From Octopus sinensis (taxonomy: Eukaryota): a DNA stretch of 64,000 nucleotides. Positions within the stretch are counted from its first letter, which is position 1. The number at the start of each line of letters is the position of its first letter. Both the position numbers and the translations under genes were made by a program. The stretch is taken from contig NC_043013.1 in the NCBI RefSeq assembly GCF_006345805.1, positions 13,392,001 to 13,456,000 on the forward strand, given 5' to 3'. The notes below the pieces were generated by a model. The model was given only the letters and a program-made list of their open reading frames with translations. It was not told where the DNA came from and ran no database searches. Of this stretch, positions 8,151 to 59,874 are shown piece by piece.

Positions 8151-8260
8151 CTTTACTACTACAACTAGGATGTTGCGTGATACTGAATCATACACTGACT
8201 TCAGAGTTCCAGGTCCACCTCCAACCATTACTGCAACAGCTGGAATCTTGACTTTTGTCT
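8151..8260 (-). CDS. TRPM: TRPM module B exon: (E)TKVKIPAVAVMVGGGPGTLKSVYDSVSRNILVVVVK
   Basis: aattttag|AG...AAG|gtcagt; 110 nt, phase 1 to 0. Contains the GGGPGT motif. Paralog of 49845-49957. The next exon is expected left of position 1. Confidence 0.92.
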
Positions 8261-8659
8261 CTAAAATTACAGCAGAAAATATAAATTGATTAAGAAAAAA
8301 TATATATCTAATTAAATTATGAAATATGCCTGATTAAGGTAAAACATATCTAGTTAGTGTATAAAACATATACATAATTAAATTTTTAAATATACCTGGT
8401 TAAAGTAGAAGGTATAACCAGATCATGGTGTAATGCATACCTGGTTAAAGTACAAAACATACCTGATTGAGGTAAAAATATATAAATGATTAAAGTAAAA
8501 TGTATCTTTTTAATTATATCTTAATAATAAAATAAACTGATTCTAAAATACATCTCACATTAAGTATAACCTCATTTAGGTTTAAAATGTATAAGTATGA
8601 CTTGACTAGAATGTAAAGTTTAGTATAAGTTCAGGTTTTAGAAAACATAAATCAATACC

Positions 8660-9145
8660 ATGATGATGAAGATGATGATGATGATGATGATGATGATGAT
8701 GATGATGATGATGATGATGATGATGATGATGATCATCATCATCATCATCATCATCATCATCATCATCATCATCATCATCATCATCATCATCATCGTCGTC
8801 GTCGTCGTCTATACCAACATTATTAATGTCCTTCTTCTATTATGGTACAGGTTGGATGGTTTGAGAAGAACTGGTAAGCCAGAAGACCATACCAGACTCT
8901 ACCATTTGCTTTGGCATGCTTTCTGCAGCCTGATGATGATGATGATGATGATCATCATCATCATCATCATCATCATCATCATCATCATCATCATCATCAT
9001 CGTCGTCGTCGTCGTCGTCTATACCAACATTATTTAATGTCCTTCTTCTATTATGGTACAGGTTGGATGGTTTGAGAAGAACTGGTAAGCCAGAAGACCA
9101 TACCAGACTCTACCATTTGCTTTGGCATGCTTTCTGCAGCCTGAT
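8660..9145. repeat. (GAT)n/(CAT)n/(CGT)n block, tandemly duplicated with the adjacent ~130-bp RTE-tail sequence
   Basis: (gat)21(cat)20(cgt)5 + ctataccaacatt...gcagcctgatg occurs twice, at ~8670-8935 and ~8935-9145. Confidence 0.9.
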
Positions 9146-9730
9146 GTTCTTCTTAACACCAACCATTATACAGAGTTTACTGGGTGCTTTTTATGTGGCA
9201 CCAACACTAGAGAGGTGACCAAGTAACTTGCAAAACAAGAAACTGCAACTGAGTGGGGGGAGTAGTAGTGAGGGAGGTAACTTTGTGCCAGCTGATGAGA
9301 AGTTAGAGTATGAATAAGGGGAGAGAAACAGATATGTTGCAGTAGAAGAGATACATGGCTACTCCAGGTGGAACCAGAGGGAGAGAGAAGAGGGTGAAGA
9401 TGTATTGGGGCATTCCATCAAATTACAGGGAGGTGTATATATAGGAATTGGTACAGAGGATTGGATAGGGTGAGTGGGTAGGTAAGTTTATGAAAGGTGA
9501 GTAGGAGATGGAGGGGAGAAAAATGCAGTGAATGTGAGTGGAGGGAGGGGGATAGGAAGATATGTTTTGGGGGAGCGATTCAGAGATATGGATTGTGTGC
9601 AGGGGTATAGAAATAAACAACATGCCTTTAGGACATCGATTTTACATAGATAGACAGATCTCCTGAAGCCCAAATGATCAATTATCCCAGTTCTTTGTCA
9701 TATCCTCTGTGAAACTCACAATCTGAAGGT
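8810..9730. mobile_element. RTE-tail/SINE-like relic shared with paralogous 50600-51330
   Basis: Colinear similarity, e.g. gagagagaagagggtga..gatgtattggggcattcc and ctcctgaagcccaaat, in the same intron of both modules. Confidence 0.6.
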
Positions 9731-9793
9731 CATTTTACATACTTTTTCCCACATATTTATAGGTCTTCCTCCTCCTCAAGCTCCATCCACCTT

Positions 9794-55989: not shown

Positions 55990-57130
55990 GAACTAAACAT
56001 CACGCAGTCGATAAATATAGACCAGCGAAAACGTCTCCCCTGGCTACAGGAAAATAAAAATCTCTATGAAAGGAAGTGGATTTTCACTTGAAAAATGAAA
56101 TTGCGAGTGGAGAGGGAAGTTCTGTCCTTGACTGAGTGTATTGAAAGGTGGGTGAAAGTTGCAAAAATGGCAAGAGTGGATTGTACCTCTCTCAGTGTAG
56201 ACCTGTAAGTCGGAGTGGGCACTTCCTCTTGGTGTTCGGGGAAATTTCGGACAGTGCGGTTCCTCGATTATGCCTATAAGTTCTCCTGTAACAGGAGGGC
56301 ACCCACAAGCATTTAAGAAACAAAATGAAAAAAGAGTACACAACTGGAAAATGAAACCGTTGCATGGGCAATACCTCAGAGAAATCGAAGGAAAAGACAA
56401 GATCAATACTTACAGATGGTTAAGAGAAAGTGATCTGAAAGGATGCAGTGAGGCATTTATATGTAGCACCTAGGAACAAGCTCTGAGAACTAATTACGCC
56501 AAATTCCGAACCGCCTCTTTTTAGGATGTGTGCAAGCGAAAACGAAACAATCTCACATATTGTGAGTGAGTGTAGCAAGCTGTCTCAAAAGCACTACAAA
56601 AGGAGGCACGATAATGTGGCTAAGTTTGTCTCCTGGACGCTATGTGAAAAGTGCGACCTGAACTGAATACGGAAATGATACGAACATGAACCAGAAGTAG
56701 TCACTGAGAACAAGGAACATAAGATACTGTGAGATTTTACGATCCAATGTGATTCCTTGATCATGGCTCGGAGACCAGATATTGTTGTGGTAGATAAAGG
56801 GAAAAAGGAAACCAAGATTATAGATATTGCAATACCCAGAGATGCACGCATAAGTGACAAAGAAACTAGAAAAGATTGAAAAGTACAGACTTCTAAAAGA
56901 CGAAATTGCGAGAATATAGACTACGAGGAGAGTGTCTGTCATTCCAGTAGTTTTAAGGGCACTCCGAGCACTAACAACCAAGTTCGAGAAATATGTCAAA
57001 GAAATCGGAATTGACATGAGAGCAGAGCAAGGCCAAAAAACTGATCTACTGGGGACAGGTAGGATTTTGAGATTGGTACTTGTATATTGAAAGTTTCCTA
57101 CAATAATTAACAACCAAGTATCATATAATG
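55990..57130 (+). mobile_element. R4/Dong-type LINE 3' fragment
   Basis: WKMKPLHGQYLRE...CASENETISHIVSECSKL..KHYKRRHDNVA...RRPDIVVVDK..KIIDIAIP...EKYRLLKDEIARI. Confidence 0.88.
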
Positions 57131-57279
57131 TGCAGAAAGAGATTTTGTGAGATCTTGACTGCAGGCTGCTGTCTTCTCTCATAGAATCTACCAGAACAAA
57201 CGAGACTGAACGTTCTGAGAAGTAAAGCAATGATAATAATAATCTGAATAACAGAGAGTTCCGCACTCATACAGAGAAT

Positions 57280-58100
57280 TCCGCGTTGAATATCAGAAAT
57301 TGTCACCATTTTATTTTTTATTTTTTTGCTTTCGCTTATGTGCATTGTTCGTTTTTAATTTTGTCGACTACACACTATAGTAGGATCAGTTGGGCACAGT
57401 CTGTGAGTAAAGCAGCACCATGACGCAATTCACTATGCCAAACATTTGGAAATGACAAACTGTATTGCTTGGCATTCGCGCTGGAAGCTCCAATACGAAT
57501 ATTTCAGATTGTTTGGGTGTCAATCTGAGGACAGTGCAATTTGATATGTACCGAGTGTGATGAAAATCAAACATCCCCTCAACATCATAGTGTTTGGTGT
57601 AATCACTTGTGATGGCGACATTATGCCTCCATTCATCTTCCCACATGGCTCCAGACTCAGTACAGAGCCCTACATAAAGTGCTTGGAGGACGTAGTGCTG
57701 CCCTAGGTCAAGAGGGTGGCTGCTGCTGGAAGACCTCATGTCTGGCAACAGGACTCTGCACCATACCACACAAGCTGTAGAACCCAGTCATGGATATCAG
57801 ACAATTTCCGCAACCACATCACACTTAACATCTGGTTAACCTAACTCCCCAGACAGCAACCCGCTTCATTATTATGTGCGGGGCGCAGTTGAGTAAGAGA
57901 CCAATGAAACTCCCTGTGACACCAAAATTGAACTGAAAGCAAGGAGTATGGCAGTATTCACCAACGTAAACAAAACGACTGGCCTGAAGAATTGCAGTGA
58001 GTGGTTCATCTATATAATAAATTTACTCTTTAGCATTTCAAGATATTTTAATGAAAGTTTGTTAAAATATCTGTTAAAACGAGATGCGAGTGTTGCTTTC
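57280..58100 (+). mobile_element. maT/DD37D-like Tc1/mariner transposase relic
   Basis: VFGVITCDGDIMPPFIFPHG...WQQDSAPYHTS..TQSW...PNSPDSNPL. Same family as 19850-20790. Confidence 0.85.
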
Positions 58101-59710
58101 ATTTGTGCGCAATGTAGAGGCCCCCTATATATATATATATATATATATATACATACATACATACATACATACATACATACACAAATTTAGAATCCATACT
58201 GCAGCGTGACAGCGGCAGTACTTTGTTCACTAGGTTAACGATTTCAATTCTAGTCGTATGCACTATTCTCTAAAATAGAAAATGTATTAAGATTTGTAAC
58301 ACTGGTCTCAGTGTAGTCGTATCATTGCATAATGATACTATAGAATGTCTTTGATTTCATTACACTGTTAAGATTATTTAAATCTTTAAACCTTTCAATA
58401 ACTTTAAAATAGTTTTATGATATTGTCACTAGACAAAAGCGAAGAACGTTAAACCAGTGATTCCTCATGAACAAGTGCGTATAGCTTTTTCTACGAAGTT
58501 TTTACTTTCTGACGTAAGGACAAAAATAAAAGAAAGTAACTCCTAAAGATGAAGAGATAACAATTCTATAAGAAAGAATATTGTTTTCCCTAAGAGAACT
58601 TTACACAAATAAAGAAATAATTGCTTCAGTAAAACATAATGCAAAGAAATTATGTATTTTATGTATTTTCACAATCTTTAGTTTTAAAATAACCAGGGAA
58701 GATCCATGGATATGGCTGCTCATTTATATTGACTTTCTGCGGATCTTACACTACTCATTTGCTATAAGGTGATTTAATCCAAATCTCACACAACCTCAGG
58801 GTATCTTTTTCTCTATGTTGTGATAGTCACTATGTGATAGTCACGTTTTGTATTTTCGTTATTATTATATTTTTAGCTTGGGGAAAGGGAAAAAAGTGAA
58901 GTATTCAGGATATTTGCAGAATTTTTGAAACAACTGGTGGTGGAAACAGAGTAAAAACCTATAACCCATGTGTTGTCTTTAACCACTACTTCGATTCACG
59001 TAAATAATTCAACTGGATATCAGAGTCAGCAAAGCACGAAAGACTCCCAGAACCAGGCTTCTGGCAAGAGATCTCTGCTATATAACCACATCAAATCTTA
59101 ATCTCTGTCAAATAGTTACACTGCACAAAGGAAGAAACAATAAGTTTAATATAGAATGACTTGTTGAGTTATATCCATTGCAAACAAACTCTAACCAAAA
59201 CCAGAAACTGGATCAAAATGTCAAGCAAGAAATCAAGATGATTGATAATCTTTGAGAAGTGATGGAATATTGCCAAATTGATGTTTTTTTTTCTTGATAA
59301 GAAAAAAAAAAAAAAAAAAAACTGAGGCAATGTAGAACATAGTATTTTCCCCAGAAACAATGAAACAGAACTCATTCTCTATGATCAGGTAGTCAAATAT
59401 CTCATTCACTCGGCCATTTACTTTTTCGTTTCAAATAAAATAGAAAAAAATAACACACACACGAAAGTCAAGAACCCTTGAAAATATTACTTCTCTTATC
59501 ACAAAATTAGCAATGTATCATAAATGGAAATCATATAGATTTTTCTTTATGTCTTGATGTAATTTAATAATTAAATGTTACCATTTTATAATTAATATTG
59601 AACTTTCAAACAGCAACAGTAAAATGATATAAATCAATACTTAATGTTAATATGGAGAAAGGATTATATAAGAGGTTAAAAAAAGGAAAATAACTGAAAC
59701 AGAAATTTAC

Positions 59711-59874
59711 CTCCTTATTCACTAGGGATTTTTTCTCCAGTACACAGTTCCATGGTGCAATACCAAGAGTTGTCACTTCATTCATGGCAGCCACTTTATT
59801 TTCCTTATTATGCATAACTTCCCCAATATATTTCGCAACTCCAGTATGTAAGCCTTCAGTTATGATCCAAGCAT
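59711..59874 (-). CDS. TRPM: TRPM module A exon: (D)AWIITEGLHTGVAKYIGEVMHNKENKVAAMNEVTTLGIAPWNCVLEKKSLVNKE
   Basis: ttttgcag|AT...GAG|gtaaat; 164 nt, phase 1 to 0. Matches the TRPM consensus GAWIITGGxxTGVxKHVG...TIGIAPWG. Confidence 0.92.

Follow-up and report, generated by a model that had tools for sequence, protein, structure and literature searches.

A 64,000-nt stretch of octopus DNA (Octopus sinensis assembly GCF_006345805.1, contig NC_043013.1, positions 13,392,001 to 13,456,000 of the forward strand; hereafter the window) encodes on its minus strand two tandem modules of the SLOG fold that makes up the N-terminal MHR1/2 region of TRPM proteins. What the window covers is an inner part of a very large octopus gene lying within an array of truncated TRPM2-like units. 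The tandem-SLOG reading frame is real and probably translated, part of an octopus-specific, fast-evolving array. The initial annotation, made from the sequence letters, had described twelve small minus-strand exons of about 513 codons; our base-by-base rebuild returned 503 stop-free codons, or 513 when an alternative in-frame acceptor is used, and all nine peptide motifs quoted at the time lie on the minus strand where they had been placed. Each of the 12 exons is preceded by AG and a pyrimidine tract and followed by GT, with matching phases throughout. They fall into module A (exons A4 to A9, 59874-38649) and module B (exons B1 to B6, 34096-8151); as proposed earlier, the two are TRPM SLOG modules joined in one frame by the linker EDDMDTSEEAR, and both halves match the family LSDAT_euk.

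Both modules belong to the LSDAT_euk SLOG family, with a Rossmann-like alpha/beta fold and a glycine-rich loop. Against the Pfam LSDAT_euk profile (PF18139; curated cut-off 25.7 bits, passed by both modules), module A scored 165.8 bits (1.7e-48, profile positions 64-249 of 266) and module B 138.3 bits (4e-40, profile 7-210). LSDAT_prok (PF18171) also matches the two modules, at 1e-16 and 2.5e-16. The closest solved structures are those of Nematostella TRPM2 (E 2e-39) and zebrafish TRPM2 (E 9e-37), and the TRPM consensus is kept at 37 (A) and 35 (B) of the 43 most conserved columns. Like the MHR1/2 SLOG of TRPM2-type channels (beta-TRPM), both octopus modules keep LDPNHSHFILVD, a WIIxxG-type stretch and IPxVxVxxGG; module B also retains LLISVxGG, a segment that for module A lies outside the window. 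The exon structure is likewise inherited from a TRPM2-like gene. With the nearest canonical octopus TRPM2-like protein the modules share no more than 41-57% identity. In the AlphaFold2 model of P0001, the O. vulgaris orthologue, two separate alpha/beta domains reach predicted local distance difference test values of up to about 90, accompanied by a disordered N-terminus (1-123), a low-confidence linker (518-531) and a low-confidence variable loop within exon B5 (650-665). Foldseek with the same model returned TRPM MHR1-3 structures at E about 1e-25.

The gene was thought to be hidden, which it is not: public models exist under the names 'hypothetical' or 'uncharacterized' protein. P0001 ('hypothetical predicted protein', 860 aa, gene span 185 kb) covers the whole exon model and the junction between the modules, has two SLOGs and no channel domain, and shares 96% (A) and 93% (B) identity with the window model. 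XP_036366207.1 of O. sinensis (P0028, LOC115221041; 1272 aa, gene span 248 kb) contains three SLOGs: the same A and B modules (94% and 88% identity) and junction, then a third module, followed by an acidic low-complexity tail. Further copies had been suspected outside the window and are found there, as this third module of the O. sinensis orthologue and in the neighbouring O. sinensis gene (1423 aa), which has at least four SLOG matches and SLOG matches only. O. vulgaris paralogues P0002, P0003 and P0029 carry two to four SLOG stretches (four in P0029). Comparison of the modules separates several types, and type A and type B follow each other in the same order in all three genomes. The O. vulgaris models (CAI97xxxxx; P0001, P0002, P0003 and P0029) and XP_036366207.1 are orthologues or paralogues with the same modules, order and junction; as database entries, they are unnamed predictions and place the end of the gene differently.

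As to precedent, the initial annotation knew of no described multi-SLOG TRPM. This stands for the literature, where we found no describing paper, but not for the databases, where multi-SLOG TRPM-like predictions exist, for instance XP_072049890.1, a non-octopus RefSeq entry in which two SLOGs precede a full predicted channel. No paper describing the multi-SLOG octopus models was found, LOC115221041 is absent from the papers and the octopus brain cell atlas supplements searched, and papers on TRPM and on cephalopod TRP evolution do not mention solo or multi-SLOG octopus proteins.

The channel half of a TRPM protein is missing from the window and from the orthologous models. When 183 TRPM-family proteins, full-length pore-bearing octopus channels among them, were searched against the window by tblastn, no exon for MHR3/4 or a transmembrane segment came up anywhere in it, which bears out and extends the earlier observation that none lies between 38649 and 34096. 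Past MHR2, the window holds only the first helix (LRLAFVWDR...). The TRPM2-like domain PF25508 (MHR3/4) has no match in P0028, yet it matches octopus channels P0030-P0032; Ion_trans has no match in P0028 or P0029, and the records of P0001 list SLOG families only, with neither Ion_trans nor PF25508. MHR3/4, the ion-transport domain and the TRP helix are therefore present in neither the window nor the orthologous models, and the reading as a TRPM channel, which the initial annotation offered beside that of a soluble TRPM derivative, is not supported. Compared with TRPM2-type proteins, the octopus product (window and orthologous models) has no MHR3/4, pore, TRP helix or NUDT9H domain, and its polypeptide carries two or three SLOGs instead of one.

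A chain of SLOGs could also be the N-terminal extension of a real TRPM channel whose pore exons lie far downstream, the public models being truncated. Such an arrangement is suggested by the O. bimaculoides RefSeq models XP_052830018-21 (gene 404 kb), in which a module tail and acidic linker run into a complete SLOG, followed by MHR3/4 and the first transmembrane helices; the O. sinensis model stops inside the homologous acidic linker, at a place where the O. bimaculoides model goes on, and XP_072049890.1 offers a two-SLOG predicted channel in another animal. However, the O. bimaculoides model has only a module tail upstream and no whole extra SLOGs, neither orthologous model reaches a channel exon over 185-248 kb, the neighbouring O. 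sinensis gene is SLOG-only too, and the window itself has no channel exon. We regard an extended channel as quite improbable.

Fusion of the two modules would take place at the A9-B1 junction. Exon A9 (38743-38649, minus strand; AQKNNLENLRLAFVWDRSYIVKRLIFEETQQK), the last of module A, ends in the donor AAA/GTAAGA, and exon B1 (34096-34065, minus strand), a 32-nt exon encoding the acidic linker EDDMDTSEEA(R), follows the acceptor TTCTTTTATTTTCAG/G (slashes mark exon boundaries); both sites are strong and both boundaries are in phase 0. The same junction (...EETQQK/EDDMDTSEEAR/...) is drawn in O. vulgaris P0001 and O. sinensis P0028 by two independent annotation pipelines, that of O. vulgaris being an EVM pipeline with Iso-Seq and RNA-seq (PMC10700109). 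B1 contains an ATG at 34087, whose Met is retained in O. vulgaris and replaced by Val (GTG; EDDVDTSEEAR) in the O. sinensis model P0028. The other junction type of the family (HW/EDVKKWI...) also has no nearby Met, and taken together these two observations indicate that downstream modules lack a conserved start of their own. The intron between A9 and B1 (34097..38648, minus strand, 4552 nt) has no TRPM-like exon, and tblastn at E up to 1 found in this 4.5-kb interval neither an extra exon nor a TRPM leader exon; open reading frame (ORF) listing, composition and hexamer counts point to retroelement-like content without a clear CpG-rich promoter. On balance, these sequence features lead us to favour the fused A-to-B frame, as part of a poly-SLOG gene, with somewhat better than even confidence.

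Several observations pull the other way. When the A9 donor is left unspliced (38602-38648), the frame reads KVR and stops (GTA AGA TAA), with an AATAAA at 38607, 42 nt downstream, and an isoform of a single module ending at A9 is possible. The phase 0 match on both sides is inherited and had a one-in-three chance a priori. The O. vulgaris model ends by read-through of the B9 donor (...HWEVR*) and the O. sinensis model continues to a third module; since the annotations disagree on the gene end, model boundaries depend on the predictor. The paralogous models P0002 and P0003 have skipped or broken exons. Finally, the homology-search matches include no transcript-derived protein for the locus: a junction-centred search was empty and a module-B search gave genome-derived octopus models only.

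The same observations can be assembled into separate transcription units, in which module A would end at the unspliced A9 by polyadenylation, module B would start at ATG 34087 or from an unseen 5′ exon, and predictors would merely chain in-phase neighbours. The stop two codons past the A9 donor and the nearby AATAAA, the B1 ATG shared by the window and O. vulgaris, and the termination of the O. vulgaris model itself by donor read-through after module B all fit this arrangement. So does the finding that, outside octopus, most multi-SLOG predictions resemble merged neighbour genes, with repeated SLOG plus MHR3/4 in an Acipenser-labelled record and SLOG, MHR3/4 and a second SLOG in Crassostrea. 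However, this DNA is AT-rich and has about 1.2 AATAAA or ATTAAA per kb, so a copy within 60 nt carries little weight; the B1 Met is a Val in O. sinensis, B1 begins right after a strong pyrimidine tract and CAG, and the 4.5-kb interval, which looks filled with retroelement sequence, offers neither a TRPM leader exon nor a clear CpG-rich promoter. In addition, module B is barely constrained (omega about 1, see below) and keeps its frame, a better fit to an internal segment than to a stand-alone gene. Separate units are, in our view, unlikely, although with a probability that deserves attention.

The two modules stem from a tandem segmental duplication, introns included, whose period is about 36 kb. 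Regions A and B are colinear, introns included, in blastn blocks of 68-85% identity: copy A spans 43682..60428 and copy B 159..24758, both with exons and introns, and copy B continues past the low end of the window, leaving exons B7-B9 outside. The O. sinensis scaffold VCDQ01003289.1 (L001), which carries model P0100, continues colinear past copy B and contains B7. Duplication by assembly error or between haplotypes was ruled out, since A and B share only 68-85% identity in DNA and 53% in protein. The B5-B6 intron is twice as long as its counterpart in copy A.

Modules A and B are not decaying. The exon pairs that can be compared measure 164/140, 175/157 and 113/110 nt (A/B), every difference being a multiple of three, and neutral simulation left only 2-6% of sequences stop-free. 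Between A and B over exons 4-6, the synonymous rate (dS) is 0.276 and the non-synonymous rate (dN) 0.346, a ratio of 1.25. The three codon positions carry equal shares of the changes (37/38/33), a distribution that, taken alone, looks neutral and counts against a translated frame. Polarised by other octopus modules, 16 changes were assigned to the A branch and 33 to the B branch, 15 being ambiguous, and all three deletions to B; rough arithmetic from these counts gives an omega of about 0.5 in A and about 1 in B. At conserved fold columns, A and B differ in 13 of 43 positions compared with 31 of 45 elsewhere (p 6e-4), a test weakened by the fact that dS is also lower in those columns. A weakly constrained module that keeps its frame would fit an internal segment of a longer translated frame.

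The sharpest comparison comes from scaffold L001, which covers B5-B7 and excludes the junction and module A. Introns differ at 449 of 11841 sites (3.8%, i.e. 96% identity) and exons B5 and B6 together at 27 of 267 (10.1%; Fisher p 6.5e-6 against introns). These exonic differences are 25 non-synonymous and two synonymous, giving a proportion pN of 0.121 and pS of 0.033 (pN/pS 3.7): pS matches the intron rate, whereas pN exceeds it 3.2-fold (p 6e-7). In B5, 16 of 157 nt differ compared with 4-7% in the flanking introns; in B6, 11 of 110 nt differ, nearly all of them amino-acid-changing, compared with about 2% in the flanks. An amino-acid-changing rate above that of introns, with a synonymous rate equal to it, points to adaptive substitution, exon-confined gene conversion or both, since a pseudogene would give equal rates. 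The B6 loop of L001 reads GGELET, matching other module types, and is most simply explained by gene conversion. The excess of exon divergence may be partly due to conversion, and to that extent it counts against the poly-SLOG reading. For the B5 loop (FVENSRRDGPNTE / YVRNFRRDNPFAW / FIEYSRRDDPYTG), no similar sequence was found in the other module types compared.

These data also bear on the possibility that we are looking at a dead or dying array of truncated TRPM2-like fragments, with frames open by chance and annotations that are artefacts. The A-B dN/dS of 1.25 and the even distribution of changes among codon positions, the loss of some TRPM2 ligand-site residues in each module, the broken paralogous models and the lack of a transcript-derived protein among the homology-search matches would all be expected from it. 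Decay does not account for four of four exon indels being multiples of three, against 16-21% of intron indels (21% of 38 between A and B), nor for the absence of stops, the 24 of 24 splice sites kept and the integrity of both modules in three genomes. The excess of non-synonymous change over introns, with synonymous change at the intron level, and the avoidance of conserved fold columns (subject to the lower dS there) also speak against it. A dying array is, in our assessment, improbable.

Two further features of L001 were observed. Upstream of B5, colinearity is missing between L001 positions 1-9300 and window positions 19937-24758, and the scaffold shows no B4. Its exon 5 is mosaic: over the second half it is identical to the O. 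vulgaris protein, and its first half is unique. Together, the mosaic and the lost colinearity suggest rearrangement or exchange between array copies.

ADP-ribose lies in the MHR1/2 cleft of human TRPM2 between Y295 and a loop, with the ribose contacted by R302 and the phosphates by R358 and a helix N-terminus (PMC6759353). Aligned to Y295, R302 and R358, module A presents F, R and P, plus a GGGLET loop. Module B has a six-residue deletion at the clamp, then R and R (the R358 position being taken from orthologues, as exon 7 lies outside the window), and GGGPGT. The full set of cleft residues is found in neither module by alignment to human TRPM2; Y295, R358 and the GGPGT loop of TRPM2-type domains are each altered in one or the other. 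Judged by this alignment, the fast-changing positions of B5 and B6 appear to fall in the TRPM2 cleft elements.

The history of the gene can be outlined as follows. A block of about 36 kb, from the N-terminal leader to the first helix after MHR2, was duplicated in tandem together with its introns; copy A would have lost its downstream exons and inherited no terminal exon, and B1 would have kept its strong ancestral acceptor. Because copy A has no terminal exon, the B1 acceptor is strong and both sides are in phase 0, a read-through transcript should splice 38649 to 34096 in frame by default. In the predicted product, an acidic linker of about 25 residues ties SLOG A to SLOG B, and modules encoded downstream of the window follow. 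It would be a soluble poly-SLOG protein in which the fold is kept and the cleft loops are quickly reshaped, presumably by adaptive substitution and by exon exchange between modules. In the reading that we favour, such a protein would bind or buffer ADP-ribose-like nucleotides, dock on the N-terminal rings of TRPM2-like channels as a modulator in the way of short N-terminal TRPM isoforms, or do both.

In animals, the MHR1/2 SLOG of TRPM proteins is known as the single ligand-sensing layer of a channel subunit, and short N-terminal isoforms (TRPM2-S, MLSN-S and short TRPM8 forms) regulate the full-length channel. The predicted octopus proteins would likewise be soluble, pore-less N-terminal TRPM fragments, and docking on the N-terminal ring of a channel, or competing with it, is plausible. 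The short isoforms, in contrast, arise by alternative splicing of a channel gene and carry one partial N-terminus, whereas the octopus units are dedicated, duplicated and contain several complete SLOG folds. Prokaryotic SLOG sensors are a second point of reference: the SLOG of ThsA, from the Thoeris system, binds a cyclic ADP-ribose isomer. The octopus modules share the fold of these LSDAT_prok proteins and likely the nucleotide-derivative sensing role; they differ in having no attached effector domain, in their animal lineage and in the tandem arrangement of domains.

We tentatively speculate that octopuses of the O. vulgaris group have derived from TRPM2 a large, diversifying array of soluble poly-SLOG proteins, with cleft loops under diversifying selection and shuffled by gene conversion. 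Although we think it doubtful in this full form, such an array could serve as a repertoire of sensors or sponges for signals resembling ADP-ribose or cyclic ADP-ribose (e.g. in immunity or stress), or as tunable modulators of TRPM2-like channels. To our knowledge, no use of the TRPM sensor domain as a soluble sensor or sponge repertoire is known in animals. If the gene is real, several SLOGs without a pore would mean that the sensor can act on its own as a soluble protein, and the excess of amino-acid changes in the cleft loops would indicate a shifting ligand or partner specificity of the sort commoner in recognition and defence genes. The gene would also be a worked example of how duplicating a block inside a gene, where the intron phases are compatible, yields a repeat protein. 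As a practical caution, truncated units inflate the TRPM counts of cephalopod genomes.

The remaining exons, all on the minus strand, are as follows. Module A begins within the window at A4 (59874-59711; AWIITEG...SLVNKE), which is 94% identical to P0001 residues 231-281, and continues with A5 (55574-55400; GSWPADY...LDPNHSHFILVDDGT...EKIP), matching residues 282-339 at 98% identity. A6 (49957-49845) holds the GGGLET-type glycine loop, aligned to GGPGT of TRPM2, and A7 (43553-43480; GCGPAADFMAF...) the GSGR motif, in which the arginine (R358 in human TRPM2) is replaced by proline. A8 (42206-42022; KLKADIREK...DFDLAIFKAVFK) corresponds to P0001 residues 403-466 at 97% identity. Module A is incomplete only through the window edge: P0001 residues 1-230 are unmatched in the window, tblastn at E up to 1 found no exon A1-A3 in the 60-64 kb part, and these three exons are presumably located past position 64000.

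Between A7 and A8, 480 nt downstream of A7, lies a degenerate exon-7-like relic (42998-42929, minus strand; GSDQAVGIMTYSYEITLKFIDRN) with AG and GT sites and a length of 70 nt, the wrong phase for A8. It is the sole additional piece that tblastn with the 183 TRPM-family proteins turned up in the window. The relic is also present on scaffold L001, where model P0100 reads into it.

In module B, exon B2 (31194-31113; SVYEKRINSCDEFGMVKFEKGDQKIAK) has the alternative in-frame acceptor at 31224; this upstream site, 30 nt away (31195-31224), adds ILLQLFIWFR and is chosen by the O. vulgaris model, the downstream one being chosen by the O. sinensis model. B3 (25737-25554; IDYMNHQTPMEA...LLISVIGG...AARDN) opens the second SLOG fold and is 97% identical to P0001 residues 544-606. 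B4 (24174-24035; VWIISEG...IAERIYVKDKKLR) has lost the conserved IAPWxxV motif; a second GT, 9 nt past the B4 donor (24026-24034, minus strand), would add VSN in frame. In B5 (19237-19081), the fast-changing loops FVENSRRDGPNTE and DNGTPYEF flank the constant core LYDLDPNHSHFILV. B6 (8260-8151) carries the GGGPGT-type glycine loop and is the last module B exon inside the window; B7 was looked for at the low end of the window and is not present there.

The window is AT-rich (37.8% GC), with microsatellites, retroelement debris and small, widely spaced exons; a tRNA scan of it returned nothing. The protein identities to the O. vulgaris and O. sinensis models and the intron identity to L001 mark it as octopus DNA of the O. 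vulgaris group. Pfam on the retroelement-like ORFs of the window gave one match only, a reverse-transcriptase fragment (RVT_1, 1.8e-16; match 47268-46591) at 46096-47268 of the minus strand, in the A6-A7 intron and in gene-sense orientation, probably a long interspersed nuclear element remnant. Within the A9-B1 intron, a GC-rich stretch (47-55% GC) at about 35000-36650 of the minus strand contains ORFs with LPKIHKP-like and YVGQTERRLGDRFAEH-like motifs and no Pfam match; from these motifs, we take it to resemble a Penelope-like retroelement with a GIY-YIG nuclease.

Simple repeats cluster in the B5-B6 intron, where very long (TA)n tracts, reaching about 790 nt, together with (ATG)n/(ATC)n tracts that read as poly-Asp or poly-His in one frame, occupy 9794-10335, 10942-11133, 13970-14754 and 8660-9001. 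Downstream of B6, a 166-nt repeat is present in 3.8 copies at 6510-7147. Satellite-like tandem repeats with periods of 67, 130, 307 and 345 nt lie at window positions 11322-13008; on the O. sinensis scaffold L001 (1000-4800 and 29750-30477) they come back several times, with 72-90% identity.

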